A DNA stretch of 64,000 bases from Macrostomum lignano (GCA_002269645.1 NIVC01001849.1:144235-208234); one strand, 5' to 3'. Counted from the first letter of the stretch, positions 4,524-44,521 are shown. Notes: generated by a model not told the origin, from the letters alone. Numbers and translations: made by a program.

Positions 4524-5102
4524 ATGCAAGCTATCAAGTGTGTTGTAGTGGGCGACGGAGCTGTGGGAAAAACCTGCCTGCTCATCTCCTACACGACCAA
4601 CGCCTTCCCCGGCGAGTACATCCCGACCGTGTTTGACAACTACTCAGCCAATGTGATGGTGGACGGCAAGCCCATCAACCTAGGCCTGTGGGACACGGCT
4701 GGTCAGGAGGACTATGATCGGCTGAGGCCGCTGAGCTACCCGCAGACTGACGTGTTCCTTGTCTGCTTCTCCCTCATCAGCCCGGCCAGCTATGAGAACG
4801 TGCGGGCCAAGTGGTACCCGGAGGTGAGCCACCACTGTCCCAACACGCCCATCATCCTGGTCGGCACCAAACTGGACCTGCGCGACGACAAAGACACAAT
4901 TGAGAAACTGCGCGAGAAGAAGCTGGCCCCCATCACCCACCTGCAGGGCATGACAATGGCCAAGGAGATTAACGCGGTGAAGTACCTGGAGTGCTCAGCC
5001 CTGACTCAGAAGGGACTGAAGAACGTGTTTGACGAGTCCATTCGGGCCGTGCTGTGTCCGAGGCCGAGGCCGTCCAAGCGAAACAAGTGCGACTTGCTGT
5101 AA
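4524..5102 (+). CDS. Rac1: Canonical Rac GTPase, 192 aa, intronless
   Basis: [55 protein letters not shown], polybasic tail, CAAX CDLL. Confidence 0.97.
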
Positions 5103-7648
5103 CAGTGCGCGACCCCAGGCCCGACTCATCCTCGGACACAGCTACTGTAGCTAACAGTTTTGTACATGCGTATAGATGCGACCGATATAAAACTAGATTT
5201 ATTATGCACTAATTCACCTCTGCACCGCCCTCTGTCTCCCTCTGCTGTACGCCACTAGCGGCGGCTTTCCATCGCCCTGGCAACCACGCTGAGATGCTGA
5301 ATCTGTGTCTCTGGATTTAAAAAATAAGGCAATCTACCGTGTCTTTTTGTAGTTTGTTATTTAACTGATTATTGTCTGCAAATAAGAAATCTGGTCGGCT
5401 GCGTCTCTAATATTTATTTCATGCTCCAGGTAGTCTTAACATCGCTTTTATATTGCTTGTATAATATATATTATGATATTTTCTGCAATTTCAACTAATT
5501 TGATCGATTTGTGTCTTCTAGTGGCCTGACATACCATTTAACGGTGTTGTTCTTCTGTCCCCTCTACTCCCACAATGCTGTTTAAGTTTCTTTGCTCTAT
5601 TTGGTAAACAGTTTCTGCTCTTAACTCATCAAAGTTTAAATTATGATTCTATTCAATATACGAGCTATATATATTATATGTTCCGAGTTTTACCTGTCTC
5701 AAATATCCTTTCTAATTGTCTGTCACTTTTGCAACGCGTGCTTGCCTCCTGTTTCTTTCTCTCATGCGCACTCTTATGCTTTTTTACCATTGTACCTTAG
5801 GTAGCAAGTACATGATGTACCCGCAGCACCTGGGGTTGCGTAACATCTTTATTTACTATTCTCAGTCGGTTTTACTTGTACAAATAAATGGCAATAAAAT
5901 ATATTTGAATATACATTATAGTCGCTTAAAAATCTATTTATTCCTGCTTGAGTCTTTGCTACGACGATTGAGTCCAGTGCGTCATAATGAGTGGAATGGC
6001 CCAAATCTCATATTTTACTGGTTTCTTCTACTTATGATTTCTTTTTTGGATTGTTTAGAACAGTTGGCATGTATGTTGGTCAAAAGCTAGGTAAAAAAAT
6101 CGAGGCTATGATTTTCTTCGACCAAGGAGGGAATATAACATTAATAAGCTAAGTAAAAAACAGTAAAATGCATAGAATCTCTACTGAAGGGTGTTCCAAA
6201 AGTTCCCTGAATGTCTACGAGTATTACAGCTCATCCATGAAAGGCAGCTTTAATACGAAGAAGGTGTAGTTAAAATTATGTCAGTGTCATTTGACATTTT
6301 CCATTCATGCGCCGCATCAAAACTGTCTGCACAAGTCAGCACTAGTGTTACACATCCTCAAATTTGTGAGAAGTCGGGGACTCAACAGGCTGGGATCATT
6401 AAGAGTTCCAGATCAGTTGGTAGATGTCCAATCGATCAGACATCTCTCGAACTGTCACACGAGCATTCGAGTTGGACTGGCCATCCTTAGGCCGTTCGAT
6501 CTATTCGAACAAGTAAACAGTCGTTTTCCTAATGCTGTTCTCATCATGGATAGAGAAGAGATGCTCAGAAATCTTGACTCCACTCCATACGGCTGACTAC
6601 AGGGCAAAAACTTGACTCCGTTGACTCTCAGGGCTGTAGAGAGAACTAATCTTTTAAAGAAATCTGCAGCCAAAAGCAAGCACTCGGTATGGGATCGTTG
6701 CGCTGGAAACACCGGTTGCTCTGATACACAGAATCAGCAATTCAACCGGTTGGCCATAGACATTTTGACATTTTTCCACGAAAGTTGATAATGGGCATGC
6801 GACATTTAAGAATGTGGACCGATATAGTACTGAATTGTGCAGACATGATGCAGCGCAGCAATGGAAAATAATATTGACATTATTTTAACTACTCGTACAC
6901 CTTCGTATGAATTTTGCATTTTATTTTACATGCAAGATTTAACGAACACATTAATGAGCTGCTCTATTAGACATAAAGAGAACTTTTGTGACATCCTTCG
7001 TATTTTTAATCTTTTGCTTGGTAGAGGAGGTGCGACAAAACAGGCAAGCAATGCGCCCAAGCGAGATGACGAAGTCTTGCTGCATTTTCAAACTTTTCGT
7101 CATGTGATACGTTTTAGTGGGCAGTTATTAAAAGGTGTCTAGTTAGAATTGTACTGTACGCTAGAGTTGTTGCGCGCACTCGCATGTGTACACTTCATTT
7201 CTAGTAGTTAGCAGAAAATGGGGTGCACGAAAGCCTCGCTGGGGCTGTCGCTGTCGGTTAAGCCTGCGGTGCAGTTTATACTCGTACTATGTACTCGTAC
7301 ATAGTCAATGGTTATGCTGCATGCACAGGAGTTTGTTTGTGTGAAATCTGAAGTTCTCAAAACAACTTTGATGAATAGGCTTTACAATATGGTTTTTTTA
7401 TAGCGAGCATATCAGTGATGCTAGATTAGAATTACATAGCAGGCGGAAAGTATCCTTCACAGTTTCTGCTGCGCTCACATGGAGAGTCTCGAAAACATTT
7501 CAAATGTGGTTTTAATAGAAAACAAATGCGGTGTTCTTTCCGCCTACTGCTAACACAAGGTTACATGATTAGGGGGGGGGGTAAAGTTACAAATTTGATT
7601 ATAATACCTGGGAAATCGTAATCGTGCTAAGAATTGGTTGTAGGAGGC

Positions 7649-8242
7649 CTACAGCAGGCCGCAGGAGAGTTGCTTCTTTTTCTTCTTGCCATCGTCCTGC
7701 AGCGCGTGGAAGTGTGCCCGAACAGCCTCGGTGAAGACTGCGTCTAAATTCTTGCTCTTCTTAGCCGAACATTCCACGAAACGGTCGGCATTGATCTCTT
7801 TGGCCAGCTTTTCGCCTTCTTCTTTGGAAATCGGGTCCTTTAACGCTTCTCCGCCGACTTGATCGTCCCGGGTATCGGTCTTGGTTGCAACGAGAACTAC
7901 CGGAGAACGGCTGAACCCACCGAAGTGACGCAACTCCGGCACCCACTTGGCTTTTACGTTTTGATAGCTATCTCTGTTATCCACTGAATAGCACAGCAAG
8001 AATACGTTGGTGTCTTTGTAACCCAATGGCCGCAGTCTGTCGTAGCTCTCCTGCCCGGCCGTGTCGTATATGGACAGCCTTACTGCCTTTCCGTCAACTG
8101 AAATGTAATGCGAGCTATCGTCGGCCACGGTTGGCGCGTACTCTTCCGGAAATGTGTTTAATGTGTAGACCAGGACCATGCTGGTCTTTCCAACTGTACC
8201 GTCACCAACCAGCACTAACTTTATCGTGGTTATGTTCGACAT
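7649..8242 (-). CDS. Divergent Rho-family GTPase (RhoX1), 197 aa, CAAX CGLL
   Basis: ATG at 8242 (MSNITTIKLVLVGDGTVGKT), YAPTVADDS, YDTAGQESYDRLRPL, TKTD, ECSAK, KKKKKQLSCGLL. Convergent with Rac1. Confidence 0.92.
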   Translation of the reverse strand: MSNITTIKLVLVGDGTVGKTSMVLVYTLNTFPEEYAPTVADDSSHYISVDGKAVRLSIYDTAGQESYDRLRPLGYKDTNVFLLCYSVDNRDSYQNVKAKWVPELRHFGGFSRSPVVLVATKTDTRDDQVGGEALKDPISKEEGEKLAKEINADRFVECSAKKSKNLDAVFTEAVRAHFHALQDDGKKKKKQLSCGLL

Positions 8243-8700
8243 GTTTTGAGGCACTAGCGTGCTGATACACTCGAATGTGGTCTTATCGGCGTTCAAAATA
8301 CTGATACGAGCTATGCTATTACAAACTTATCATAGATATTTATAATGTTAGACGCACCCATTTACCTGTACTAACACAGCTTCGTACCCCTTGCGTGCCC
8401 CCTCTGTGTTAATTCGTCTAACTAGCAAACTATGAAAAAAGCAAAAAGGATGGGTAGGGCGGAAAAATACCACGCCACCACCCAACACTACCCCCGAGCA
8501 CAATGCCGAGGGTTTTAAATACAAAGCTCAAACCTAAGAAGACGACTTGTCTCAGTTCTTCAAAGCTTCTGTCTGTTGTGGCAGTGGGGGTAGCAGGCGT
8601 GTAAGGTAGTTGGCGTGAGAGGTTATCAGAGACTACCGATAAACGACCTGTTACAGGTTTAAAACTATGGCTGGCTATTCGAGACACCATTTCTAAGAAC

Positions 8701-8842
8701 AGCATAGTGTTCATTGCGATTGTGCTCAACGAACTGCTCATGGTGGCCTGCACTGTGCGCACCTGGCACTGGCTGATGTCTGTAGCGGAGCTGCTCAGTC
8801 TGCTCTGCTACCTGCTGGCTGTTGTTCTGCCTAATTATTTTG
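8701..8842 (+). pseudogene. ATP9: Isolated exon of a class II P4-ATPase (ATP9-type flippase), C-terminal TM region
   Basis: [47 protein letters not shown] matches the ATP9A/B motif ELLMVALT..TWHWLM.VAE.LSL.CY; GT donor at 8843. No other ATP9 exon found. Confidence 0.75.
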
Positions 8843-9355
8843 GTTTGTTTGCGCTTAATTTGTCTGTGTATTCCTGGAGATTGTTGCAGATTAGCGAGGA
8901 GACTGTTGCAGATTAGTGAGTAGCCTGTTACAGATTAGTGAGGAGACTAGTGATTAGTGAGAAGATTCTTGCAGATTAGTGAGGAGACTGATACTACGTA
9001 ATGCGCAGTTAAGTATTGATTTTTAGGCAGATTTGATGCAAAAAATGCAAATTATACTACTATCTGAAAATGAAGTAAGTAGTATATGAAAAGGCTATCC
9101 TAAGCGTGTTATATGCGTAGCATACCTCAATATGTACTGGTGTATGTACATTAATCCCATGTGAAATGGCACGGCTCAGCTCATTGGTTTTATGAATCTA
9201 TTTTGCCATTCTTAGATGACTGTGTAACAATATGTGTGACAGAGATTATAAAATAGATTATCAAAACCAAAGATTCGAGTTGTGTCATGTGTGATGCCGT
9301 GGCTTTCGCCCGAGATAGAACAAGGATTTCCCTGGGTGGTCGGGTAGGTCTTGTT

Positions 9356-10665
9356 ATCCCACCGCTGCCACCAGTGTAATGGCTGTGCCTAATGCTCTCC
9401 GCTGCCACCAATGTAATGCTGGTGCCGAATCCCACCAATGTAACCAATGTAATGGCCTTGTGGATCCCCGTCTCTTTGGTGATTACTGCTGTTGCCTACT
9501 ACTTCCTCTGTCTGCCCTCGCTATCTGGCACGGCCGGTAGCTGGCCTGAGTGGTCTAGCACTATGGTCCGAATTAACCCCTCTTAGTCTCCACTGAGTAC
9601 AGTTAGATAATAACCGAGTATTGGTAGTTGGGTTGCTGCCACCTTGTAGGTCTACAGGTGATATCCTCGACAGGTTACCCCTAGGTAGGCCTACTGATAA
9701 GTAGAAAATAAATAAGACAAACAAGTCAGTTAAACGTTTATTAATGTGAGTAACGGTCACAGGCCGATCCTAGAATATCGTTTAATAGCTCAACTGGTGT
9801 CGCAGTAACAAGTCCTAACCCTATTAGGTGTCACTGATGTTGCCCAACAGCGTAGGTTGTAGGCCACGAGACCAGGTCCAGACGGTGTTGAAGGTCTGGC
9901 GAGCTGATGACACAAAGACCTGCGGCAGTCTTAATGAGCAAATGGCAGCTGCAACAAGGATTTGTTAGCAGGTTATCCCTAGGAAAAGCGTCTAGCGATC
10001 TGCCTAAGCTAGTTCATCTAGGAAAAGCATCTAGGAATACTAGCCTTTGCTCGAAGCCAAGCAGGCGGTCTCCGAAAGGAGATCGTCTCCTGAACGAGGA
10101 TGGTCTCTTTGGGCCTTCACCTACTCTGTATTTATACTAAAATTCGGGGGTCTCAGGGCCAATGGGAAGCTCAGAGGCAGTTCCGTGGCAGATCCCATGG
10201 CAGTTCCGTGGACTACCCGGAGCCAGGAGCGATCTTGGAGATGCCCATAAGACATCTGCCTCATCATGCAGCCTCCGCATGGCCTGCTGGTACACTGCTT
10301 GCATGTTGCGGCATGCAAGGAGTGCACCAAGACCCCACGAGAGCCTACCCCGGGCGGAGAGCTATGCTCTCACTCCCGCTGACTAAATAAGCCTGTACTA
10401 AAGGAGAAATATCCCACTGACTAATGTTTCTATTTTTAGCCCATTGCAGACTGCGCCAGGGGGAGAGGGGGAGAGAGTTTCTCTCCCTGTCCCGCGACAG
10501 CTGCACACCTGAGCCTGCACAAGGGAGGGGGAGGAAGGGACAGCCCTATGCCCAGCTCCCACTGCTGCAGCCCAAGCACTAACTGACTAAGAGGGGATCC
10601 CAGGAGCAGCCTATGCTAGCTACGCTGGATCACCACACATGTATTTTTTTGATTTTTAGGGTACA
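9356..10665 (-). mobile_element. LTR-retroelement remnant: tRNA-Leu primer-binding site plus probable LTR
   Basis: ATCCCACCGCTGCCACCA (9356-9373) equals the 3' 18 nt (with CCA) of tRNA-Leu, next to TGTAAT (minus-strand LTR end ..TACA). The distal boundary is a guess. Confidence 0.5.
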
Positions 10666-11098
10666 GGAAATACACGTAGGATAAAAAATTAACATTAGAA
10701 TCCTGATTTTCTGACCGAAAAGCTTAATGAATATCAATAGAGCTACGAGGTATAAGAAAAGCACAACATATCAACAGATAAACATTGGATTTGCGTCCTA
10801 TCGAAAGTAATAATTTTTGTGCTGAAAAATCAAAAACTTCTATCTCCGTGGGGTATTTTTCGGTGAAAAGTGGCCTTCAAAACATTTTCCATGGATTTTG
10901 AGTGTCGCGTCTTGTATATACTCGTTAGTTGCTTTAGTTGTCATTGTCCTTGGTATTAAATTGACTTCAAGCTCCTCTTTATTACTTTTGTAGTAATAGG
11001 CTTAGTGTCTTATATCGTTATTATCGACAAATTAATCCTTATTTTTTTTAGTTCTTCTTTCAGATTAATCTCTTTCAGAGCTGCGCTACTGTTAGTAG

Positions 11099-11773
<675 letters not shown>

Positions 11774-12608
11774 ATCTTTTGCTTTGTCGAGGGGGGTTAT
11801 CGCGTCAAAACAGGCAAGCAATATGCCCTAGCGAGAAGACGGAGTCTTGCTGCATTTTCAAGTTTTCGTCATGTGATCTGTGTTTTAGTGGGCAGTTAAA
11901 AGTGTCCAGTTTAAATCTAAGATTTTGCACAGTTGCTACAGAACTTGTGCAAAGAATTCGCGCACTCGCATGTACGTACACTTCATTCCTAGTAGTTAGC
12001 AGGAAAATGGGGTGCACGAAAGCCAATTGCTCGAGCTTTTGCTGTTGGTACAGCAGTTTGCAGTACAGTTTATACACGGTCAATGGTCATACGCAGGAGT
12101 TTGTTTTTTGCAATTTAAAGTTCTCAAAACAACTTTGACGAATAGGCCGCTTTACTATTAAGCTGTTTATTAAGTGCGAGCATATCAGTGATACGTGATG
12201 CTACGGGCAGATTGACTTACATAATAGCTTAGAAAGTAAGCTTTGTAGTTTCTGCTGCGCTCAAATGGGAAGTCCTGAAAACATTTCAATGGTGGTTTTA
12301 TTTTCTATTCTAGAATTTATAGTCCTTGATGAGATTTATGTGCAGGAACTCGTGCTAGTTCGATTTAAAAACTGAAACGGATAAAAATTTGTTAATTTTT
12401 TAATACCCTATTCGGGCGAATCAACTGGTTCGTCAAATTATTGTCAATCCTCAATGTTTTTTTTACTTACTGTAAGTCTTGCAGCAAAAATGTGACAAAT
12501 TTTCAGCGGGATTTCAGCATTGTAGACTGGAGAGTTTGCACTGTTCTATTCGTGAAAAGCAAAAGCAGTGTTCTCTCCGCCTACTGCTGGCTCGTAACGC
12601 AAGCTTGG

Positions 12609-13289
12609 TTACATGAGTAGAGGGGCATAAAAGTTGCAAACTGGAGTATCATACATGAGCAATCGTAATCGTGCTAAGAATTGGTCGTAGGAGGCGAACA
12701 GCAGGCCGCAGGAGAGTTGCTTCTTTTTCTTCTTGCCGTCGTCCTGCAGCGCGTGGTAGTGTGCCCGTACAGCCTCGTTGAAGACGGCGTCCAAGTTTTT
12801 CCTCATCTTAGCTGAACACTCGACAAAACGGTCGGCTTTGATTTCTTTGGCCAGTTGTTTGCCTTCAGCTGTGGAAATCGGGTCCTTTACCGCTTCTCCG
12901 CCGACTTGATCGTCCCGGGTATCGGTCTTGGTTGCAACGAGAACTACCGGAGAACGGCTGAACCCGCCGAAGTGACGCAACTCCGGCACCCACTTGGCTT
13001 TTACGTTTTGACAGCTATCTCTGTTATCCACTGAATAGCACAGCAAGAATACGTTGGTGTCTTTGTAACCCAATGGCCGCAGTCTGTCGTAGCTCTCCTG
13101 CCCGGCCGTGTCGTATATGGACAGCCTTACTGCCTTTCCGTCAACTGAAATGTAATGCGAGCTATCGTCGGCCACGGTTGGCGCGTACTCTTCCGGAAAT
13201 GTGTTTAATGTGTAGACCAGGACCATGCTGGTCTTTCCAACTGTACCGTCACCAACCAGCACTAACTTTATCGTGGTTATGTTCGACAT
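12609..13289 (-). CDS. RhoX2: chimeric RhoX copy with stop-codon loss, 226 aa
   Basis: ATG at 13289. TAG of RhoX1 is TTC here, so SCGLL reads on into FASYDQ...APLLM. Confidence 0.85.
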   Translation of the reverse strand: MSNITTIKLVLVGDGTVGKTSMVLVYTLNTFPEEYAPTVADDSSHYISVDGKAVRLSIYDTAGQESYDRLRPLGYKDTNVFLLCYSVDNRDSCQNVKAKWVPELRHFGGFSRSPVVLVATKTDTRDDQVGGEAVKDPISTAEGKQLAKEIKADRFVECSAKMRKNLDAVFNEAVRAHYHALQDDGKKKKKQLSCGLLFASYDQFLARLRLLMYDTPVCNFYAPLLM

Positions 13290-13747
13290 GTTTTGAGGCA
13301 CTAGCGTGCTGATACACTCGAATGTGGTCTTATCGGCGTTCAAAATACTGATACGAGCTATGCTATTACAAACTTATCATAGATATTTATAATGTTAGAC
13401 GCACCCATTTACCTGTACTAACACAGCTTCGTACCCCTTGCGTGCCCCCTCTGTGTTAATTCGTCTAACTAGCAAACTATGAAAAAAGCAAAAAGGATGG
13501 GTAGGGCGGAAAAATACCACGCCACCACCCAACACTACCCCCGAGCACAATGCCGAGGGTTTTAAATACAAAGCTCAAACCTAAGAAGACGACTTGTCTC
13601 AGTTCTTCAAAGCTTCTGTCTGTTGTGGCAGTGGGGGTAGCAGGCGTGTAAGGTAGTTGGCGTGAGAGGTTATCAGAGACTACCGATAAACGACCTGTTA
13701 CAGGTTTAAAACTATGGCTGGCTATTCGAGACACCATTTCTAAGAAC

Positions 13748-13889
13748 AGCATAGTGTTCATTGCGATTGTGCTCAACGAACTGCTCATGGTGGCCTGCAC
13801 TGTGCGCACCTGGCACTGGCTGATGTCTGTAGCGGAGCTGCTCAGTCTGCTCTGCTACCTGCTGGCTGTTGTTCTGCCTAATTATTTTG
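13748..13889 (+). pseudogene. ATP9: Second copy of the ATP9-like exon
   Basis: Identical to 8701-8842 (+5047). Confidence 0.75.
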
Positions 13890-14402
13890 GTTTGTTTGCG
13901 CTTAATTTGTCTGTGTATTCCTGGAGATTGTTGCAGATTAGCGAGGAGACTGTTGCAGATTAGTGAGTAGCCTGTTACAGATTAGTGAGGAGACTAGTGA
14001 TTAGTGAGAAGATTCTTGCAGATTAGTGAGGAGACTGATACTACGTAATGCGCAGTTAAGTATTGATTTTTAGGCAGATTTGATGCAAAAAATGCAAATT
14101 ATACTACTATCTGAAAATGAAGTAAGTAGTATATGAAAAGGCTATCCTAAGCGTGTTATATGCGTAGCATACCTCAATATGTACTGGTGTATGTACATTA
14201 ATCCCATGTGAAATGGCACGGCTCAGCTCATTGGTTTTATGAATCTATTTTGCCATTCTTAGATGACTGTGTAACAATATGTGTGACAGAGATTATAAAA
14301 TAGATTATCAAAACCAAAGATTCGAGTTGTGTCATGTGTGATGCCGTGGCTTTCGCCCGAGATAGAACAAGGATTTCCCTGGGTGGTCGGGTAGGTCTTG
14401 TT

Positions 14403-15712: not shown

Positions 15713-16145
15713 GGAAATACACGTAGGATAAAAAATTAACATTAGAATCCTGATTTTCTGACCGAAAAGCTTAATGAATATCAATAGAGCTACGAGGTAT
15801 AAGAAAAGCACAACATATCAACAGATAAACATTGGATTTGCGTCCTATCGAAAGTAATAATTTTTGTGCTGAAAAATCAAAAACTTCTATCTCCGTGGGG
15901 TATTTTTCGGTGAAAAGTGGCCTTCAAAACATTTTCCATGGATTTTGAGTGTCGCGTCTTGTATATACTCGTTAGTTGCTTTAGTTGTCATTGTCCTTGG
16001 TATTAAATTGACTTCAAGCTCCTCTTTATTACTTTTGTAGTAATAGGCTTAGTGTCTTATATCGTTATTATCGACAAATTAATCCTTATTTTTTTTAGTT
16101 CTTCTTTCAGATTAATCTCTTTCAGAGCTGCGCTACTGTTAGTAG

Positions 16146-16820
<675 letters not shown>

Positions 16821-31544: not shown

Positions 31545-31896
31545 AGGTCACAAGGATTGTCTTAGCTATAGCGCTTCTCAAAGAATAAAGTTAGAATTAG
31601 AAATTTAATTTTAGAAACTTCGATCGTTTCACCCTATGCCACTCTTTACCGAACTATTCGTTCGGGTTCTTATTCACACTCCGTGCTTTTAGAAGAAGAC
31701 GTAAGTTTTCTGACAAGCAAACCTGGCTAGCTCCTATATAACCTATGAATCAACATTTCATTTGCATGCTACTACTCGTATAGTGTCTAAGCACTGGGAG
31801 GCCGCCTCGCCTTACTTGCCCAGCTACCTTACGCGGGCACCGTTGAGACAAAATCAGATCCTTGCCGATGGGGTATTTAAATTAACTTGACAACAG

Positions 31897-32847: not shown

Positions 32848-33243
32848 TTTTCTGCCCTCTTTTATTCTTAAACATAAATAGAAATTTCAAGCACACAAAC
32901 ATTTACCTGCTGGCCTTGATGGATGTACAGATACTATTTTGTCTACTTCTCTACTTCGCCCAATGCAGTGAAAACTCAGAGGCCCTCTTTTCATTCTTCT
33001 GCCTTTTTTGTAGTTCGCCTGCTTACCCGTCTAGACGTACACGGTGCTATCAGAATCGCGGAATTGTGCTGTCTTCTGTTTTGTAAGAGCTAAATATAAC
33101 TCCGGCCCTTTCTATCCAAATATGTACACCCGAAACATCACGGATGAGAAATAACGATGTAGAACGTTATTTAGTGCCTCCTTCGACTTGGCAGTTAACC
33201 CAGCTCTGCAAAAAAACTTGTCGGAAGTTTGATAGCAGCAATC

Positions 33244-35593
33244 ATGAGAATGATCAAATGTGTTATTGTTGGCGACTCTACCGCTGGCAAGACCTGCATG
33301 ATTGAGACCTACGTAAATGGCTCAATGCCAGACACGTTTATTCCAACAATTTACAAAACGTACTCAGCTCGGCTGCCCATGGAATCGGAGTCTATCGAAC
33401 TGGCGCTGACAGACACGGGAGGCAGTGAAGGCTACGACACTCTCAGACCAGTCGCCTATCCGCAGACAGACGTGTTTATCATCTGCCTTGACTTGACCAA
33501 GTCAGCCGAACTTGTGCTTGGCAATGTGCGTACAAAGTGGTACCCGGAGTTGAGCCACCACTGCCCCTCAGCACGCATTATTTTGGTTGGAACAAAGCTT
33601 GACATGCGAACAGGTTTGAAAATAAGCGAGACCAAGGAAGAAGATGCTGAGAAAAACCTTACAGCTGAGCAAGCCAACGAATTCGTCAAGGAAATCAATG
33701 CGGCAAAGTACATGGAATGCTCCTCAATTACTCAGCAAGGATTAAAAGAAGTGTTCGAAGAGGCCGCTCGCTTAGTTCTTAACTCTTCTGACGCTCGCAA
33801 TGGCAAAAAGAAGAAAAATGAACACCACGGGTGCGTAAAGATAGTTTCAGCCACTGTTTGAGTTCACTTGTAGGTTAAAAATGTTGTACATGTGTATCAA
33901 GAATCTTTTATAAAGGGCCAACAGAAGTGAAAGTTATCAGCAAAGAGCTTTGAAAAATAATCAAAGCTCTTTAGATTCTGGCTTGGGTACTTCTCGAGTT
34001 TTTTCACAGATTTAAAATGCACGAGCTATCAAAATGCGTGAGCGAGAACGCTTTCAAAAACAAGATCGCCACACACTACTTAACAACTTGCAATAATTTC
34101 AGAGATTCCAAGAAAGTCGTTTCGTTCCTTCATTCGCTATCGTCGTCGAGAAGGAACTCTGAAACGTCTATCAAGTAATTTGCTGGAGCACACTTTATTC
34201 CTGAAATATATTCATTAAAATATTTTGCAACAAGATTTCCAATGAACCCTTGCAGGCAAAGTGTTCTTTCCGATGGTGGAACCAAAGATTCCGAGACCGA
34301 AACTTCACCTGATGAGCCGAGCATTAAGTAAATACTCTAGCTCCTCTTCTGGAGTAATTTTTGTTTTAAAATTCTGTTAGAATTCTTTTTAATTAGCCAC
34401 TAATACGAGTTTTTTGCACGAGCTTATTTAAAAAAACTTGCAGATCTCCATCATCGATTAAAGCCTTTTTCCGCGGTTTACGCCCTGGGAAAACATACTC
34501 GTACAATATCGCATCGTACGACTGTTTCTTAAATTTGAAATTATTCAGAATAATAGCATTCCTTGCCAAAACCAGAGCAGTGGAAAATGTATCCCATATG
34601 CTCATATTTTTTAGACAACAGAAGTCGCACGATAAGAAAACCAAAGCTTCGAGTGAAACTTGCGAGCCAGCGGACACTTCATCCGCTGAAGTTTTGGATC
34701 AGCCCCAACAGCCTGCTTCGAGGTAAGCTTTTTCTAACTGGAACTCAAGCTATGAAGGATTGCAGACACAGTTATCTGTCTACGGGAATGCGTAATCTTC
34801 CCTCTTAACAATGTCTTGCAGTACACAAGAAGCCGTGAGTCCCGAGCTCAGCGAAGACGAGCAGCCGACATCCGAAACAGAAAGTGACGACGAAAGCTCG
34901 GACACGGAGTCCGCCAGTGCTCAGCGAGAGCCAGTCTCGGAAAACCTCAGAGAGCCTAGTTCTCGAGTTGATTATCCGGAAACTATTGTCGTGTTTCGAA
35001 CCGCCGAATCAAAGACGAAGAGTGACACAATAACATTAAAAGTCGTCATAGTTGGAGATGAAGCGGTTGGCAAGACCAGTCTGCTGACCGCATTCGCAGA
35101 GGACCAGTGTCCTCAGGAGTATGTTCCCACAGAGACCGACGACTGCTTTGCCGTGGAGGGTTCACTGGCTGGAAGCCAACTGTGTCTCCGCTTGTGGGAC
35201 GTGAGCTGTGCGGAGTCCTTTGACCGCTTAAGGCCTCTGCGGTATCGCCAATCAGATGTGTTTATCATCTGCTTCTCCCTCATCAATTCTGCTAGTTTCG
35301 AGAATGTACGGGCCAAGTGGTACCCGGAAGTGAGCCGTCATTGTCCTGAAAAGCCATTTATCCTGGTCGGAACGAATTCCGATCTGCGCGATGACCCAGA
35401 GACCATCGACAAGCTGGAGGAAAGGAATCTCGTTCCAATCAGCGTGACTCAGGGCGAGCAGTTGGCTAAAGAGATCGGTGCTGAAGTGTATCTAGAGTGC
35501 TCCGCTCTGTGTAGAACAGCTGTGGAAGACATCTTTAGACAGGCGGTATTGGCTTCCGTGAGAAAAACAGAAAGCAAAAATCATCACGGGTAG
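33244..35593 (+). CDS. Predicted gene 3: tandem double Rho-like GTPase with acidic Ser-rich linker, ~536 aa; join(33244..33830,34103..34174,34256..34327,34615..34722,34822..35593)
   Basis: Donors GG|GTGCGT, AA|GTAATT, AA|GTAAAT, AG|GTAAGC; acceptors ATTTCAG, CTTGCAG, TTTTTTAG, TCTTGCAG. All phase 2; internal exons of 72, 72 and 108 nt are open; total 1611 nt. No CAAX. May continue from GG|GTAGAT at 35590. Confidence 0.7.
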
Positions 35594-37283
35594 ATCGATC
35601 GAAATTGAATACAAGAAACCAACGCACTCATGACAATATGGGCTAAATCTGTATTCAATACAAATCGTGCATGACAACCTCTATTAGCAGTACCATTTTA
35701 AACGCATATTCGGCTCCATATTAAAATGATCCTGAATTCACAGTACCTGCTGTTTTTCGTTCGTACTCTCGTAGCTTTCGATTTCCAGACTCATAAGAAC
35801 TTTAACATAACTTGTAAGCCAATATCATCAGTTGCTTTGGTCCGTCTTTGATGACATTACACCATATGTGCAGACGCTTACGCAGGACCCGTAACTTGAT
35901 AGATACGAGCGTAGATTAATGGATTAGGTCGTAGTAACTGCGCACTGTAATTGCACATGTGTTGTTGAGCAGCTCCCGTTCTTAGATTACCGTTGATTCT
36001 TAACGTACTCATTTTTTCACATTCACATAGTTCCCTTGATATTCAGTTGTAAATAGGCTTGCTATTTTTCTGCCATATTTTCACCTTAAAACTATCAGTA
36101 GCACACAGATTCTTTGCTTCTTTTGTTATCATGCAGTGTGTTGAGGTCTCATCAAATTCAAATGCAGCGCCCCATTTTTAGATTTATCCATATTTTCTGC
36201 GCCTTCCTACTTTAAGTGACTTTTTGAGCAAAATATCTCCTTTAAGCAGAAATTAAAGGAGACTAAATAAAATATTTTTTGTTACCCGCTACTCTCTGAT
36301 AGCTGCCGCACGTGTTTCTTTAGACCTAAAGAAATGAGCTTTATTGAAAACCAGGCCTGAATTTTAGTGAAGATTACATGGCATACGAGGGTACTAAGCA
36401 TACGACGTATGTCACTGTATGTTAAATTTAATGTCGAATGCATGTAAAAGTCGACAAGTAAAGCAAGTCTGCATCTTCAATAAAGCGTCTCACAAACGAC
36501 AGTCAATCATGCTTTGCAGTCGGGGTCGCCATCCATTAATTGTCAGATTAAAAATGGCACCGAAACGGCGTTTAAAAGTGCGTGAGAAGGTCGCAAAAAG
36601 AGGTATCTTATGAAAGACACTCTTTGAGTACAAGGTTGGCGCTTACAGCGTTATCAGAGTGCTTGCATGAGAGGCTGGGTGCTGGCGGAATATACGAAGT
36701 AGACGGAGTAAGGCAAATACGAGCCATAGCTCTCTGTTGTCTACTCTCTCTACTCTTGGCTCCAAGGTTGCTTGGTCGTATTGGAGAGGAGAGTTGCACT
36801 CAGCAGCATCACCGTCACGTCTTCAGCGTAAGCCAGGCTCGAGCTTCTACTCTGCAATATGCAAACAGATTTTTTTCGAAACCCTTTTTCAAAGAATTTT
36901 TTTTTGTTTATTCGCTCCAGCTCAAAATGTGCTACAAAATGTGGTGCTTGAGTCAGATTCAATGGAGCTGGCCTGAAGAACAATGCGTTTCTGATATCAA
37001 TGATATTGTGCTCAAATGAATACCCCTCTTCCCTCCCCCTCCCCAGCATTAGGGCCAGTGTTTTATGCTTGCAATAAAGACAGTTTAAACTGAAAGATGG
37101 ACGCTTCATGAACAATAACGAACGTTAGTTTCCGAGGGCATTTTATCCACTAGACTGCAGAGCAAAGAATTACCATCTTAAATTGAATGCAATCTTGAAA
37201 ATGAGACGGGACTTTGCCCAGTTGTTTTTTAGGTATACAGCGTTGATAGACAGCCTGGCGCTAGCAGCTGACAGAGCAGCAGC

Positions 37284-40200
37284 ATGAGTTCAAACAAGAT
37301 CAATTGCCTCGCCATCGGCGACGAAGCGGTTGGCAAGTCCTGCCTGATTGACTGCCAATTAGGCATAGAATTCCAGCGCATGCACATCCCCACTGACTGC
37401 TTTAAGAAACACAGCATGGAGAGCACTTTAGAGGGACACACATTTCAGATCACACTGTGGGACTCGCCCAGTAAGGACGAATGCTTTGTCGACATGCCGA
37501 GTTACCCAAAGGCGAATGTTGTGCTTCTCTGCTTTGCCATCGATTGCCGAGCGAGCTATGAAAACGTGAGAAGAAAATGGTTTAAAAGGTGCAGAAAGCT
37601 CTTCCACAAGGCGTCCTTTATTCTGGTTGGAACCAAGCGGGACCTGCGAGACAGTTCGACATCGATTAGTCAGTTCGAAGGCCGTGATCTGCGAAAAATT
37701 ATCAACGCTGAGACTTACAAAGAGTGCTCCGCTCTGAATCCTGAGAGTGTCCGGGAAGTTTTTGAAGAGATTATTTTCACGAAGTACAATCAGACTTTGT
37801 CAAAAACAAACAAAAGGTACGTGTTCATTTTACTTTTTATTACTTTTCGTCTGATATGCCTTACGCTGAATATTTTACTACGCTCTCCTAATATTCGTTT
37901 CCTTTAAACTTTATTGCAGCAGGGCACTAAGTATTCTCCCGTCAAAAGCCATCTTTTGGAGAAGAACTAAGAGTTCGAACGAGTACAGGTATCTTTTATA
38001 TTAGAATGGCTACGTGTACGAGATGTTCTTGGTCTCGAATCATTTGATTGCGTCTTTGATTCAGAGAGTATCGACCATATCTTATCTGATACTGCGTGAC
38101 AATATTCTCTGTGCAGATTTCACAATTTGCCATTGTAGCATCCTTTAGTCATTGGTGTCTCAAGTTCATCAGTAAATTGCACTGATGACCTTCACGAAAA
38201 TGATAGGAAGAGCAACGCAAAAGCGCGAACAGTCAATACTCTCTTTATCTGTCGCAAACAAAACAGTAAATTAAAATCATTTTCTTAGAAAAAATTAACC
38301 GTGAAAAAATAATCATATTTCCTCAATAGTGCCCAAAAAAACTGATGAATGTGAGTATCTACAACCCGATCCGATTCGAGCGGCGACACGTGATCAAGGA
38401 ATCGAACCGTAAGCTTAAAATTTTTTGGTGTTCAATCTCGACAACTTGTTTAAGTTTGCTCAGTATACTACTAGCATACTACATGTACTCAAAAGCTCCA
38501 GTTGGGTGCGCTGACAAAACAATGCTGTTCTGCTCTGCTTAAAAAAATCTGAAAAAAATTTAAGCTCCCGTTTACTTTCCATCACTCATATGAGAGGCGC
38601 CGCAACTGCGGTATTTATTTACAGACTTATACCTATCAATAGCCAGTAGTAGTTTTCCATTGATTAAAAGAGTTTAAAAGCAAATTTACCAAAGTGGAGT
38701 TCAAAAAAGGCGGAACAGAGTCACCGGAAAACGCGTCTGACTCTCGCGATGCGACCTCCCTCTGGTACCTCATTTGATTAAATGAACACCCACATCAACT
38801 TGGCGCTTGCACTCGTAAATTCTCGTCGTGCTTTTCACACCCTTGTGGGCAACCCCCCCCCCACCCTATAGCACAGAGAGTGCACATGCCTGACAATTAG
38901 AAAGTCAAATTGCGGGCAACCCCCCCCCCTATAGCACAGAGAGTACACATGCCTGGCAATTAGAAAGTCAAATTGCGGGCAACCCCCCCCCCTCCAAGGC
39001 ACGGAGAGTTGCACATGCCTGGCAATTAGAAAGTCAAATTGCGGGCAACCCCCCCTCCAAGGCACGGAGAGTTGCACATGCTTGGCAATTAGAAAGTCAA
39101 ATTGCGGGCAACCCCCCCCCCTCCAAGGCACGGAGAGTTGCACATGCCTGGCAATTAGAAAGTCAAAGGGCCGCTTTACAAATTTGCGTACAGAATGAGT
39201 TCAGGAGTCAGCGGAATCAGAATTGCCTCAGCGCCGGGTTGTGGGACGATTTCGCACATCACATTCCCACGTCACACAAAGCGATGCGTCAGGGTGCCCA
39301 CAGCCCTCCTGCAAATATGAGCGTTCTTCGTTATTTCTAAAAAAAGTCGGTCTTCCCTAGTTGAGGATCCCCCATCAGTTACGGTGCTTGAAAAATGTCG
39401 AAATAGGGTGCCTACGTAGTCTCGCACCCAATGCCTGCTGAATGTCCGGAAGTTTCGCCTAGAAGAAGGCCGTTAAAGTCAGAGACAATAACGAAATTTG
39501 AAGGCTTGGCAAGGCCGCACTGAGTTGCAGCGCTTGCTCGTAATTTCTGCCTAGGGGGTGCACTGAATGCATTCTGAGGGAAAAAATCCGGACCTTCTGG
39601 CAAAATCATTGAATATCTTTGAATATCATTGTTGAATATCATTATTATTGAATGTCATTGAAATCTCGGACGATTTCGAAGGCTAGTGACATGAATCTTC
39701 TTTGACCATGTGCGAGAAAAATCTAGCCATCCTTGTGAATTTTCACTGTAGCAAAAATGTCTGGCTGGATCCTTAACAGAAATTGTTTTTTACTCTTCCT
39801 GTTATTAAACATAAAATTCGTTTTCTTCAAATGAAATATTTCTAGAGATTTTGATTATCCTTTGGCCGGAGCAACTGGAGGCGCCGATCCAGACATCTAT
39901 ACGTGTCCGTCTATAGATTTATACAACCGGCATGGCTACATGAAGGCGGATGTTCAGGCAACAAATCCGTGAGAAAAAGAAATTTTATTTTACGAGCTAC
40001 ATTTGACTACTCGCAATAAAACATAATAGGGGCGCTTCACAAGAAATTTCACAACTTTGAAAACCCGTGCTAGTCACTCCCGCAATCCAAAATTTAAAAT
40101 AACTTCGCGATATGAAAATTTGAGCTTGTGAAGTTTCACTCTTCAAAAAAGTAACAGATAAGACTTTTCCAGGATGTGAAATTTCAAACTGGCGAATGCG

Positions 40201-43200
40201 ACCCCGAAATTCTTAAAATGTACAAATACGAGCTAGCTTGACTAATTACATGACTTACGTAGAGGCAGAATGGGCATACCTCACTGAGGATTTTTTCCTG
40301 GAGGCAGCGATGTCTGGCAACACAGTAACGTCCCGAGGGCCATATGTCCTTGCGGTTGAGTTGGACAGGGCCTGCGGAGGGTGGGGGAATGACAGGAGAT
40401 AGGCACGCGGGATTTCCGGCAGTTGGGGTGTTAGCCCACCTCTCCCTGTGCTGCCACCCACTGATTGATCCGGGTGGTGACAACGTACAAATAGCTACTT
40501 GAAAGCCTAATTTAGGTCAAATCTTTCTCTTCAGCAAACAGGAAACTCTTCAGCTTAGATTTCTGCACTTTTGAGTATCACTTGAAGCCAAAGTGTATCT
40601 TGAATAAATCGATCAGCTATCGATATCTTGAAATAATTTCTGATATACAAGAGAAAATATTCAATCTATACTACTTATAGTACACTTTTAATATTTTTTG
40701 TTTCGCATCTGGGGTCTTTACTCAAACCATCAAGCCGACGTGATAAAAGCACTAAAACGGTTATTTGCAGGACTAATGCGGGCTGCTACAACAGGGAGGC
40801 TACAAATGAAGAATATGTGTACGACTATATTGATGATGAGCTATCGGAATCTAACAAACAAGACACAATTCAACAAAGTCCGTTCAAGACTGACGACCTT
40901 GGTCAGAGGTAGGCATGCAAGATTCTCTTAGTGTGTCTTTCTGGATATATTTGCAATGCTCTTCCTTGAAATTCCCTCCACAGAGCACCTTAGATAGTTA
41001 ATACGAGCGTATGTAGTGCACAAGTTTAATAAACAGTTTAGTCACAATTTCAACTGTCACAGTTTAGATTTGCAAACCAAAAACTGGCCCGCGAAACAAT
41101 AAGGACTGTGAGACCAAAGATCCCTTACGAGACCGGAGAGGAGAATGAGTAAAGAGTGGAGAGGGGAGATGAGAGATGGAAGTAAAGAAAGGAGAGGATG
41201 GGAGAGAGGATAGAGGGGAGAGGGGAGATGAGAAAGGAGAAGAGAAAATGAAAAGAGAGCTGAGAAGAGACAAACCTTGAGCGGATGGGATTGCGATTGT
41301 GAAGTTTCAAAGGACTGGAGGGGCGGAAAGAGAGGCTTTGAGGGCCGGAGTTTGACAACCTCTGGGATAAGACCAAGCTTTGACAATTGGCTTATTTTTG
41401 TTGCAATTTCTCTGTACGAGCTAAGCTATTAGTCCAACGACCTTATGTAGATTATTGCTAATTTATTGTGAATTCTGAATTATAAAGCCTATTATTGAGC
41501 CTTCATCGAAGAATATTCAACCTAGTTGTAGGGCTTTACACGATTAATCAACTTCAGTTAACTGATAATTGAACGCAACAATATAACTTAAACATTTCTA
41601 CACCTTTGAAGGCCTCTACCACAAGCCCAGGAAATACCTCTGCCACCACCACAGCTTCTGCCTCCAGTACCTGACAGGTACATATTTTTTGCATGAAACT
41701 TCTAAATCAATGATAAAAGCGTTATGATTTTATCCTAGTTTTCAACTAAAAATCAACAAACATCGAATCGTTTTAGAGCGTTAAAAAAGAGACAGGTTCA
41801 AATGAAAGCAGAGCAAGAGGAACGGAACAAAAACATAGCTGCCGTTGTCCCTGCGTTGAAACTAAAAATCAATGTCGTTGGTGACGAGAAGGTCGGCAAA
41901 ACCTGTCTGCTCGTGGCCTATGCTGAAGGACTCTGCCCAGTTGAGTATGTTCCTACTGAGACCGACGACTGCTTATCAAAAGAGGTTCAGGTAGATGGAT
42001 ATACGATTCGCGTTGGCCTGTGGGATAACAGTGGCTCGAGAGACTATGACCGAATGCGGCCGGGAAACTATGAAGGGACAGACGTCGTCCTCATCTGCTT
42101 CTCCATTGCCAGTCCCGCTACCTTTGACAGCGTGCGCACCCGATGGCTTCCAGAGATAGCTCTTCACTGCTCGAACACTCCAATAATTTTGGTTGGGACC
42201 AAGATGGATGCGCTCGACGATAGAGTTGAAATGGAGAAACTGCACAGAAAGCGGCTTGCTCCCATCAGCAGCTTGCAGGCGACAGCTCTGGCCAAAGATA
42301 TTGGCGCTGAATTGTACATTGAGTGCTCGGCTCTGAGAAGATCGGGGCTAGATAGCCTTTTCAAGGCGGCCGTAAGAGCGGCTTTCGAAAAACAAAAGTA
42401 AGATTTTTTAAGCATCTATCTCAAAAAAACTTTGCAACAGCAACAGCTGAAACTATCGTTTTGTTGTTCCTACGCTCGTATTATGGTAAAGTTTCAACGA
42501 TGATGGGGGTTCTTTTGTCCACCATTAGATTTTGCGTCTTGTTTTTACAGAAAAATTCTGGAAGTCGGCTCAATACAAGAAAAGGAAAGCAGCAAAACTG
42601 AAGCCTCAGAGCCTCACGATCAGCTGGATGAGCCTCACCGTGATTTCGACGAGTGTAACGAATTTGCCTCGTAAGTTAACTTGAAATATCCTATTAAAAA
42701 GTATACATGCAATAGATGATCACCGAATCTCACATTTAAACAGTGCTCAAAGTTTCGACTCCAACGACCATAGAGACGTGGAATATGACGTTTGTTCTGG
42801 CCAATCTGAGGGTTTATTTAAGCCCCATAAAGCACAGCCGCCGGTTGTGCCTCCGCATCCGATTCCAAAGCCGCGAGGTATTCGTCGATTAAACTCCAGT
42901 ACTGAGGCACAGTCAGGAGTCATCGAACAAACAGAAGTTTATCCTTCACAGGAACCTACTGGACCCGCTGAACAAACTGAAGTTTATCCTTCACAGGAAC
43001 CTACTGGACCCGCTGAACAAGCTGAAGTTTATCCTTCACAGGAACCTACTGGACCCGCTGAACAAACTGAAGTTTATCCTTCACAGGAACCTACTGGACC
43101 CGCTGAACAAACTGAAGTTTATCCTTCACAGGAACCTACTGGACCCGCTGAACAAACTGAAGTTTATCCTTCACAGGAACCTACTGGACCCGCTGAACAA

Positions 43201-44521
43201 ACTGAAGTTTATCCTTCACAGGAACCTAGAGTTTCGTTCCAAGCTGCGACACAAAAGTTAAACGATCTGAACAGGTGAGCTCTGGGTGCATGCACTCTTT
43301 TACTCTTGCGCTAGACTAAAAAAAATTTTTATGTTCGGATTTTGGCAGTTAGCAAAGCATGGTGTCTGAATTGAGTGAAAGTAGGTGAGCAGGAAGGTGT
43401 CTGACTCTCGTGCCAAGCCAAATTACGAGTGACTTTGGGCTTTTGCGAGAAAATCAAGCTTATCAAATTATTCTTGACAATCTCCGAGGTACAGAGTGTG
43501 TACATGTTTGACGATAAGAAAGTCAGGGTTGCTTACATTGTGTGAGTGTGTGCCTTTGTACGTATCCGTGTGCGTTCGCGTGCTCAGGGGTTAGAGGAAT
43601 AGGTATTGCTGTTTACCTTCAGGATTCTTTATTTTGAGGCCTTCATTTTGCAGGGGTACTCAACGGCCCTCTTTGAACTGACTAAAATAACTGCATTTAA
43701 ATAATATCGAAGCTACATTACGACCTACAAAATCGTAATTCAACAATTCCAGACGAAACAAGGAGGCCATTTATCCAGTTACCTCACCTCAGGGCTTCTG
43801 TCTGATCATCAACATAAAAAAATATAGAAATCGCGCGCTATTTGAAGAAAGAATTGGCTCGGAATTAGACGTGGATAGAGTGAAGAGATTGTTTACCAGA
43901 TTAAATTTTATTGTCGAGGTTCACGAAGATCTAACTTGCAATGAACTCGTTCGAATCGTAAGTCTTAAAGCCCTCTCTCCGGACCTTTCTAACCATGGCT
44001 GTTTCGTATGCTTCATCATGGCTCATGGTGACGAATCCTCCATTTACGGCATCGATGGTGAAGCATGGGAGGTCCAGGCCATCGCTAAACGGTTTCGAGG
44101 AAACGAGTGCACCGGACTGTGTAACAAGCCGAAACTCTTCTTCATTCAGGCATGCCGAGGAAAGGGTTGCGAAACCATTCCAGGTGCATGGGTGGACCAG
44201 CAAGTGTCTAATGCATATTACTGCCCGAGGGATAGCGATTTCGTGTTGTGCTTCGCCACTCCAAGCGGCCAGGCTTCTCTAAGAAACCCTACAGAAGGGT
44301 CGCCATACGTGCAGACAGTGTGCGATGTGATTGAAGAGATGCACAAGACCGAGCACCTGCTCGACATGCTGACTATTGCCAACGACCGTCTCAAGAAAAA
44401 CCCAGTACTAAGAGATGGGAACAGGTTATTCGTCGTGTCGGAGACGTTGACACGATTATCCAAGAAGTGCTTCTTGGACCCCGGACTAGCTTCCGAGTTT
44501 GAGTCGAACACAGAAAAGTAG
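37284..44521 (+). CDS. Predicted fusion gene 2: pseudo-Rho domain + atypical Rho domain + repeat linker + caspase, ~948 aa; join(37284..37816,37920..37988,40771..40908,41612..41677,41777..42397,42551..42670,42744..43274,43753..44521)
   Basis: Seven GT-AG introns, all phase 2 (GTACGT, GTATCT, GTAGGC, GTACAT, GTAAGA, GTAAGT, GTGAGC). Internal exons of 69, 138, 66, 621, 120 and 531 nt are all open; total 2847 nt. An in-frame TGA upstream of ATG 37284 marks the start. Caspase motifs IYPVTSPQGFCLIIN, EERIGSELD, FIMAHG, IQACRG (44147-44161), SLR..GSPYVQ. Confidence 0.8.
38835..39167. repeat. ~63-66-bp tandem repeat (~5 copies), intronic
   Basis: GCACATGCCTGGCAATTAGAAAGTCAAATTGCGGGCAAC(C)n..GCAC(G/A)GAGAG. 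Confidence 0.9.
40260..40483 (-). mobile_element. Internal fragment of the LINE family seen at 60345-64000
   Basis: Homologous to 60688-60935 (HRERWAN.PTAGNP..LSPV.PPP...CPFC). Confidence 0.85.
41060..41364 (-). mobile_element. Second copy of the hAT-like non-autonomous element
   Basis: Minus strand begins CAGAGGTTGTCAAACTCCGGCCC; GA-rich body; homologous to 18719-19010. Confidence 0.55.
42925..43227 (+). repeat. Coding 45-bp tandem repeat (EQTEVYPSQEPTGPA x ~6.7)
   Basis: Unit GAACAAACTGAAGTTTATCCTTCACAGGAACCTACTGGACCCGCT inside exon 42744-43274. Confidence 0.95.

Follow-up and report, generated by a model that had tools for sequence, protein, structure and literature searches.

Caspases are normally activated through death-fold prodomains (CARD or DED), and the question raised by one locus of the flatworm Macrostomum lignano is what else may stand in the place of these domains. 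The locus lies in the final 64 kb of contig NIVC01001849.1 (assembly Mlig_3_7, GCA_002269645.1), a stretch of 64,000 nucleotides (nt) referred to here as the window, in which Rho- and Rac-type small GTPase sequences are arrayed beside caspases. A search of the window with human Rac1 (tblastn) located 15 Rho-type segments between 4524 and 42386, and human caspase-3 (tblastn) together with Pfam located two intact caspase domains at 27660-28388 and 43772-44521. An earlier note, made from the DNA alone, had counted about 15 Rho-type domains (canonical Rac1, two prenylatable relatives, RhoX1-3, two truncated Racs, six fused domains and one remnant), and tblastn, translations and Pfam returned the same inventory. 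The six caspase-linked Rho domains are labelled A to F, with A and B in gene 1 and C, D, E and F in a second locus (Table 1).

Do the Rho and caspase exons belong to the same genes? The gene annotation of the assembly was built from RNA-seq using StringTie, TACO, TBONE and TransDecoder (PMC5730564), and its models of 804, 757 and 1015 amino acids (aa) join both exon types, bearing out the fusion of Rho domains to caspases that the earlier note had read from the DNA. The 804-aa product annotated for gene 1 has a size that requires RhoA, RhoB and caspase 1. In gene 3, PAA63380.1 (BOX15_Mlig000293g2, 757 aa) maps to 39940-44521 and, from the ATG at 39940, comprises RhoF, a repeat-bearing linker and caspase 2, and PAA49772.1 (1015 aa, on a sister contig) is a RhoE-RhoF-caspase protein that begins at the RhoE ATG. 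For RhoC and RhoD, the annotation of a sister contig has a two-Rho gene of 560 aa, and that of the window contig has a gene of 244 aa. Sister copies of the locus are found on NIVC01000540.1, NIVC01000686.1 and NIVC01003792.1 (98.6-99.6% identical to the window contig), which fits the known redundancy of the M. lignano assembly (PMC5730564). Every mapped junction is GT-AG and in frame, and neither caspase exon has an in-frame ATG ahead of the first strand of the fold, so the protease could not be made without the upstream exons.

We consider it highly unlikely that these genes are chimeric read-through models of tandem neighbours, or that the Rho segments are pseudogene debris in untranslated parts of caspase transcripts. 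Such an origin would be consistent with the disagreement among models for one locus, with the 7% of M. lignano transcripts that are multi-gene precursors (PMC5730564) and with the genuine pseudogene unit inside the array. It would also fit UniProt A0A1I8GCE2 (1207 aa), which strings together C, D, E and F but has implausible introns of 1 nt and 17 nt and omits most of the caspase; owing to these pseudo-introns and the skipped caspase, we gave this model little weight. However, all six Rho frames and both caspase frames are open on the sister contigs (two haplotype or homeologue copies), nonsynonymous divergence (dN) is well below synonymous divergence (dS), and the caspase exons, having no ATG of their own, are not translatable alone. 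The splice phases are also compatible, the donors of RhoA (AAG/GTACGC, after NHR) and RhoE (AAG/GTACGT, after NKR) occupy homologous positions, and the C-terminal CAAX box is missing from exactly the internal domains.

What kind of GTPase domain precedes these caspases? Aligned with human Rac1, RhoA, Cdc42, Rnd3, RhoH and RhoBTB2, all six fused domains are closest to Rac1 (38-53% identity, above RhoA and Cdc42), and their identity to Rnd3, RhoH or RhoBTB2 (27-43%) lies below the Rac1 figure in every domain. Pfam Ras scores range from 76 to 128 bits across the six (cut-off 21.6), RhoB has only Rac1 proteins, from a wide range of animals, as its nearest database relatives, and the best structure matches of RhoF (PDB) are likewise Rac1 (E = 2e-59). 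The Rho insert helix is kept in A, B, D and F, diverged in C and deleted in E. Every fused domain has lost Gly12 (replaced by R in A, by E in B, D, E and F, and by S in C) and Gln61 (replaced by F in A, by S in B, C and F, by A in D and by K in E). The P-loop GxxxxGK[ST] is intact in all six, as is a G5 motif of the form SAL or SSI; Thr35 is present in five (not A) and TKxD also in five (D has TNSD), Tyr32 is kept in B, D and F, and only B, C and F have an intact DxxG. None retains a C-terminal CAAX, and Phe37 and Tyr40, the residues needed by canonical Rac effectors, are replaced throughout. In the free genes of the array (Rac1, Rac193, Rho208 and RhoX), alignment with human Rho proteins found canonical G1-G5 motifs throughout.

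By its motifs, the fused set has the pattern of atypical, GTPase-activating protein (GAP)-insensitive and constitutively GTP-bound Rho proteins, without orthology to them. Since the P-loop Lys and Ser/Thr and, in most cases, Thr35, Asp57, TKxD and SAL are kept and positions 12 and 61 are substituted, most of the domains are predicted to bind nucleotide but to be insensitive to GAPs. We suggest that most probably still bind guanine nucleotide without hydrolysing it or responding to GAPs, and that they are not anchored by lipid. The earlier note described these domains as pseudo-GTPases; most are better named GTPase-deficient atypical Rho domains than nucleotide-free pseudo-GTPases.

The six domains fall by alignment into two types, one variable (A, C and E) and one conserved (B, D and F), and the repeating unit of the locus is a variable Rho, a conserved Rho and a caspase. 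This unit occurs as A-B-caspase 1, as C-D without a caspase, as E-F-caspase 2 and as a dead unit. The last had been listed as a single Rho remnant; the Rho fragment at 30188-30328 is present, but it does not stand alone and belongs to a decayed Rho-plus-caspase unit whose caspase pseudogene (31892-32444) was found by relaxed searches to have in-frame stops and frame changes and to lack the QACRG region. Members of the variable type are each nearer to Rac1 than to one another and have nothing in common in switch I, and the most degraded fused domains are A and E, in which switch I or DxxG is lost. B, D and F are mutually 49-55% identical and share a derived switch I, [DE]YVPTE[AT]DDC, in which Rac1 residues 36-40 are replaced; the earlier observation that the caspase-proximal domains keep YVPT is thus true of B and F, and also of their relative D. 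Among these three, 56% of switch I columns are invariant versus 38% overall, and no segment but the P-loop is better conserved than switch I. RhoC and RhoD have the tail pattern K-N-[EH]-H-H-G in common.

The linkers also follow a common plan. Those between the Rho domains are acidic and have a VYD core in common, and a proline-rich PP[LV][PV]PHP stands directly before both proteases (27600-27650 and 42840-42880), as PPPLPPHP in gene 1 and as PPVVPPHP in gene 3, where tandem 45-nt repeats have been added after it. The proline-rich motif and the acidic VYD core are possible docking or cleavage sites. Expansion of the 45-nt repeat appears to be very recent.

How old are the fusions, and are they maintained? 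Pairwise dN/dS is 0.16-0.35 wherever dS could be computed (0.17 for B versus F); dS is saturated for most pairs of fused domains, which limits the claim to values below 0.35 where the ratio is defined. By these measures the fused domains are ancient and in general under constraint, and the Rho-Rho-caspase architecture has been kept in two paralogues with saturated dS. The conservation of the switch I motif across B, D and F, for which dS is saturated, points to a fixed partner and not to diversifying selection. On the sister contigs the six Rho and two caspase frames are intact, and coding changes between sister copies amount to 11 nonsynonymous and 2 synonymous in the linkers and 1 in a domain core, small numbers from patchily diverged sequence that do not amount to a formal test. 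In the comparison of the window with one sister contig (L008), about 7.4 kb without a substitution (32855-40271) are followed by about 70 substitutions in 1.5 kb (40271-41745), and this dense patch takes in the linker exon 40772-40909, in which 7 changes are nonsynonymous and 2 are synonymous. The mosaic divergence suggests gene conversion or a recombinant haplotype. An argument for purifying selection from exon (0.27%) versus intron (0.77%) divergence between sister contigs was dropped because the divergence is patchy.

Both caspases are predicted to be competent, retaining the full catalytic apparatus. The catalytic His (MAHG) and Cys (QACRG) align with those of caspase-7, as do the Arg, Gln and Arg that we take to form the pocket for a P1 Asp (NRLGSD or ERIGSE, QACRG, and ALRD or SLRN), and Asp residues are present in the intersubunit linker of both proteins. 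The nearest solved structures for both are caspase-7 and caspase-3 (E about 2e-37), and the folds of the two halves are fixed by their similarity in sequence to Rac1 (E = 2e-59) and to caspase-7 (E = 2e-37). Upstream of the caspases, Pfam found no CARD or DED in the window frames or in sequence P0021, only Ras and Roc, and no ankyrin repeat (Ank) match in the same frames or in P0021.

The closest caspases overall are ankyrin (ANK) and kinase-ANK caspases of M. lignano itself (41-50% identity), with P0024 (ANK) the highest at 50%. Other close heads from this species are kinase-ankyrin (P0037, P0050 and P0144) and LRAT-like (P0062, which is PAA65113.1, and P0074, which is A0A1I8GH60). The LRAT (NlpC/P60-like)-caspase combination of P0062 and P0074 is not mentioned in a 2024 survey of lophotrochozoan caspases (PMC11463336). 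That survey reported ANK caspases, one kinase-prodomain caspase of M. lignano and a ROC-prodomain caspase of Owenia fusiformis, described flatworms as having lost the DED/FADD route while carrying ankyrin- and kinase-headed caspases, and stated that no further unusual prodomain was detected in platyhelminths (PMC11463336). The Rho-caspase genes thus went unreported there, and our literature search found no description of Rho-caspase fusions. A HMMER scan with a RhoA-RhoB-caspase query recovered Rho and caspase in one protein, among the top hits, from this locus only; the scan covered 1.84 billion cluster representatives in which relatives above 50% identity are collapsed, so that close orthologues from Macrostomum would not show up. 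With caspase 1, P0021 and RhoB as queries, word-indexed searches returned no orthologue elsewhere closer than about 44-51%; low-complexity repeat words overwhelmed the one with P0021. Two unnamed Logan and JGI sequences among the matches (P0061 and P0186) have a PF17111 N-terminal domain fused to Rho-type G domains, P0061 with TPR repeats in addition. We take PF17111 to be the HeLo-like domain of fungal STAND cell-death proteins, and in these two proteins a Rho-like module may have become attached independently to a domain related to cell death. P0038 (Elasticomyces elasticus) is a long protein ending in tandem Rho-type domains, without a PF17111 match.

By what route did Rac genes become caspase exons? 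The locus shows that intronless Rac paralogues were duplicated in tandem beside a caspase of a clade expanded in M. lignano, that in some Rac copies the stop codon and CAAX box disappeared and a 3' splice donor arose, which made these copies upstream exons in frame with the caspase, and that the Rho-Rho-caspase unit was itself duplicated. The free Rho genes are without introns, and each fused Rho domain is likewise one exon. RhoC still has a vestigial polybasic KKKK and CVKI, a former CAAX box, immediately past the splice donor that ends its exon (33820-33861). In RhoX2 and RhoX3, loss of the stop codon, which RhoX1 retains, adds 29 residues and buries the prenylation box, and on sequence grounds this loss is a present-day example of the first fusion step. 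Canonical Rac genes here adjoin stop-loss intermediates and a dead copy, so that the route from signalling switch to protease prodomain can be followed step by step at a single locus.

The signs of birth and death described in the earlier note were found again: a tandem unit (5047 bp start to start; 7559-13309 aligned with 12607-18356 at 98.9%), which two sister contigs carry in one copy fewer than the window, together with truncated Racs, stop losses and transposon material both within the Rho array and adjoining it. The fresh duplication that it listed applies to the RhoX/truncated-Rac unit only, and not to the fused domains, which are old paralogues with saturated dS.

A record of expression comes from positional RNA-seq, in which fragments A-D gave 248, 207, 175 and 143 reads, respectively, for Mlig000293.g3 (2274 nt); this transcript is classed as Non-Specific and has no significant response to social environment (PMC7336406). 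The length of 2274 nt is exactly that of the coding sequence (CDS) of the 757-aa protein. This record speaks for broad, somatic and constitutive expression and against a function confined to the gonads. The idea of a role specific to testis or sperm was considered and dropped, given the Non-Specific class and the highest counts in the head fragment. The supplements of PMC5946080 and PMC12896417 did not yield the gene identifiers of the locus.

Based on these features, we propose as the probable reading that the genes encode lineage-specific long-prodomain caspases in which locked Rac-like modules serve as a docking or regulatory domain. Tandem Rac-derived G domains would occupy the place taken by CARD, DED or ankyrin repeats in other caspases, and would act, in the manner of Rnd, RhoH or the head of RhoBTB, as static binding modules in a GTP-locked state. 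The caspase-proximal module would offer its conserved derived switch I, YVPTE[AT]DDC, to a dedicated partner, and binding of this partner, aided by PP[LV][PV]PHP, would recruit or cluster the zymogen or release its autoinhibition, and in this way activate a fully equipped caspase. The setting would be broadly expressed and somatic, and could be stress, immunity or tissue turnover.

Several points weigh against this proposal. The models of 757, 1015, 560, 244 and 1207 aa are mutually discordant, and the number of Rho domains per mature protein is uncertain, lying between one and four. M. lignano mRNAs are often trans-spliced to a spliced leader (PMC5730564), and alternative use of such trans-splicing could realistically give rise to isoforms. 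Enumeration of GT-AG exon chains did not reconstruct the path from RhoB to the last exon of the 804-aa model, as relaxed thresholds gave 45,691 solutions for 804 aa; by its homology with gene 3, the last exon of gene 1 could be narrowed to a start near 27532, with a 64-nt or alternative bridging exon as candidate. The 804-aa protein was absent from the results of the three homology searches with caspase 1, P0021 and RhoB. RhoA and RhoE, whose switch regions are badly degraded, may bind no nucleotide, and we infer that Mlig000293.g3 belongs to this locus from its shared cluster prefix and CDS length, not from its sequence. In structures, the caspase fold is nearest to the executioner caspases-3 and -7, and given this similarity, initiator-type proximity-induced activation remains an assumption.

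Alternatively, the locked Rac-like domains could target substrates by binding Rho-pathway proteins (effector kinases, GAPs, guanine nucleotide exchange factors or guanine nucleotide dissociation inhibitors), thereby bringing the caspase to the cytoskeleton, where it would serve non-immune remodelling or cell turnover in a regenerating worm. The GTP-locked state implied by the motif pattern and the broad, somatic expression agree with this idea, as does the established cleavage of ROCK1, PAK2 and D4-GDI by mammalian caspases, and the proline-rich motif and acidic VYD linker could be the docking or cleavage sites involved. We nevertheless regard it as unlikely, since Phe37 and Tyr40, required for canonical Rac effector binding, are replaced in every fused domain; on sequence evidence it is moreover inseparable from a docking or regulatory prodomain.

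A further possibility is that the fused domains are integrated decoys, acting as a tripwire: a bacterial toxin would glucosylate or AMPylate Thr35 or Tyr32 of the Rac1 mimic, releasing or clustering the attached caspase and causing cell death. The domains are paralogues of a classic toxin target, Rac1, which is present in the same array; both Tyr32 and Thr35 survive in B, D and F, which would be compatible with sensing of toxins that glucosylate or are of the Fic type, and Thr35 survives in C and E as well. A GTP-locked state would suit Fic-type AMPylators, and the copy-number variation, pseudogenised unit and fast-changing linkers fit an immune-type family. Among the HMMER top hits, the fusion was seen at this locus alone. 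Animals are known to guard Rho status, as pyrin shows (PMC6698799). However, Gln61 and the CAAX context are gone from all six domains, which could therefore not report attack of the CNF1 or YopT type, and switch I residues 36-40, though different from those of Rac1, have stayed alike among B, D and F, contrary to what diversification of a bait would produce. Identity to Rac1 of merely 38-53%, dN/dS below 0.35 where defined and a linked expression record that is constitutive and broad likewise speak against a decoy, as do sibling caspases with ANK, kinase and LRAT heads, which are not obvious toxin targets. The varied heads of the nearest M. lignano caspases indicate that prodomain swapping is common in the family and need not imply a decoy. 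We therefore rate this explanation as quite unlikely. The proposal of decoys or sensors in the earlier note stands in so far as Rac-derived domains are joined to catalytically intact caspases; toxin sensing has no direct support, Gln61 and CAAX being lost and the bait conserved. If the tripwire reading were true, this would be the first case from animals in which a target of toxins is joined to a caspase to serve as an integrated decoy, and it would parallel, within one polypeptide, the guarding of RhoA by pyrin.

How do docking or regulatory Rac-like prodomains compare with known systems? Lophotrochozoan caspases with ANK, kinase or Owenia ROC heads similarly place a long module that is neither CARD nor DED before a complete caspase, and the Owenia (annelid) ROC-caspase, noted once, has a prodomain of small-GTPase type (PMC11463336); unlike in those caspases, the prodomain here consists of one to four tandem Rac-derived domains made in place from the neighbouring Rac array. 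Rnd1-3, RhoH and RhoBTB are likewise substituted at positions 12 and 61 with the P-loop, NKxD and SAx kept, and RhoBTB is likewise a Rho head without CAAX fused to another module, whereas the fused domains are not orthologues of these proteins, have a protease as their partner and occur in tandem. ROCO proteins (DAPK1 and LRRK) also fuse a small-GTPase domain, as intramolecular regulator, to a cell-death enzyme, but use a ROC-COR tandem with a kinase output, whereas the G domains here are of the Rho family with a Rho insert.

On the immune side, the pyrin inflammasome also couples Rho-GTPase status to caspase activation (PMC6698799), which is a functional analogy only, with no homologous component in common: pyrin has no Rho domain, senses RhoA indirectly via PKN phosphorylation and 14-3-3, and recruits caspase-1 via ASC. 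Plant nucleotide-binding leucine-rich repeat receptors with integrated domains (NLR-IDs) and mammalian NLRP1 and CARD8 have a copy or mimic of an effector target built into a death-signalling protein (PMC11781737). In these systems effector-dependent activation is demonstrated and the bait is typically diversifying, whereas the bait surface here is conserved among paralogues.

If the proposal of docking or regulatory prodomains holds, Rac-derived, hydrolysis-dead G domains would be a third caspase front end in flatworms, beside ankyrin and kinase. Should the Rho modules be only docking domains, the locus would still illustrate clearly how tandem duplication can add domains to a protein. Two questions become tractable here, how death proteases recruit new activation modules and what locked small GTPases do as modules, in an animal that has been made transgenic and is amenable to RNA interference. 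As a longer shot, the locus bears on whether animals build toxin targets into executioners.

Table 1. Positions and properties of the Rho-type and caspase features, counted from the first nucleotide of the window (contig position minus 144,234).
Feature	Position	Strand	Properties
Canonical Rac1	4524-5102	+	Intronless; 192 aa; ends CDLL; 88% identity to human Rac1; all G motifs canonical
Tandem array, 5,047-bp unit, about 2.1 copies	7559-18356		One minus-strand RhoX and one plus-strand truncated Rac per unit
RhoX1	7649-8242	-	Canonical G motifs; polybasic tail; CGLL then TAG stop (7649-7651); annotated gene 7649-8317
Truncated Rac copy 1	11168-11584	+	Rac1 residues 1-139, unrelated sequence beyond
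RhoX2	12609-13289	-	Stop TAG changed to TTC at 12696-12698; CGLL not terminal
Truncated Rac copy 2	16215-16631	+	Cut after residue 139, like copy 1
RhoX3	17656-18327	-	Stop loss as in RhoX2, TAG changed to TTC at 17743-17745
Rho, 208 aa	20258-20884	-	Canonical motifs; polybasic tail; C-terminus CTLL
Rac paralogue, 193 aa	22119-22700	-	81% identity to local Rac1; C-terminus CSVL
Gene 1, RhoA-RhoB-caspase	24125-28388	+	Annotated product 804 aa; Ras, Roc and Peptidase_C14 matches
Gene 1, placed exons	24125-24768 (RhoA), 25283-25372, 25447-25617, 25806-~26394 (RhoB), ~27532-28388 (proline-rich linker and caspase 1)	+	In-frame GT-AG junctions
RhoA domain	24203-24727	+	GDRAVGKS; switch I lost; DIGC replaces DxxG; TKLD and CSAL retained
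RhoB domain	25894-26388	+	GDEGVGKT, DYVPTEADDC, DLSGSR, TKAD, CSAL
Caspase 1 domain	27660-28388	+	Peptidase_C14 168.5 bits (cut-off 21.4); MAHG, QACRG
Decayed Rho-caspase unit	30188-32444	+	Rho remnant 30188-30328; caspase pseudogene 31892-32444
RhoC and RhoD	33244-35557	+	RhoC 33244-33831; RhoD exon 34820-35557; joined by small acidic exons 34257-34328 and 34616-34720
Gene 3, RhoE-RhoF-caspase	37275-44521	+	GT-AG at all mapped junctions
Gene 3 exons, first part	37275-37817 (RhoE), 39835-39969, 40772-40909, 41613-41678, 41778-42398 (RhoF)	+	
Gene 3 exons, last part	42552-42671, 42745-43275 (proline-rich motif and 15-aa repeats), 43754-44521 (caspase 2)	+	
45-nt in-frame tandem repeat	42925-43228	+	6.8 copies, 98% identity; encodes EQTEVYPSQEPTGPA in the linker before caspase 2
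Caspase 2 domain	43772-44521	+	Peptidase_C14 156.9 bits (cut-off 21.4); MAHG, QACRG

Among the free genes, the Rac1 reading frame is matched exactly on three contigs of the assembly and is annotated there as a 192-aa gene. The public annotation has no gene at the position of RhoX2 or of RhoX3. Upstream of the array, a phospholipid-flippase gene ends near position 907 and is followed by a 33-bp satellite in 16 copies (1474-2002). A 23-bp satellite (49 copies, 2599-3722) lies within the span of a gene with a Ribosomal_L16 domain (about 2116-4042) and is apparently intronic.

Insertions resembling miniature inverted-repeat transposable elements (MITEs) lie at 26883-27392, 28585-29059 and 30740-31543; the intron between RhoB and caspase 1 holds one such MITE-like insertion, part of which may be exonised in the annotated 804-aa model. 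Downstream, a long terminal repeat (LTR) retrotransposon at 44927-53911 starts about 400 bp past the caspase 2 stop, and a comparison of 300 nt of its two LTRs (44927-45226 versus 53612-53911) gave 99% identity. It encodes an aspartyl protease, a reverse transcriptase and an integrase in several separate reading frames, which indicates that the polyprotein is interrupted. A 545-aa frame at 55714-57351 has a TNP-like RNase H N-terminal domain and represents a protein of DNA-transposase type. The last part of the window (60331-64000) is a GC-rich (56%) block with overlapping frames on both strands, including a minus-strand frame with an RNase H domain at 60775-61698, and is probably another retroelement.

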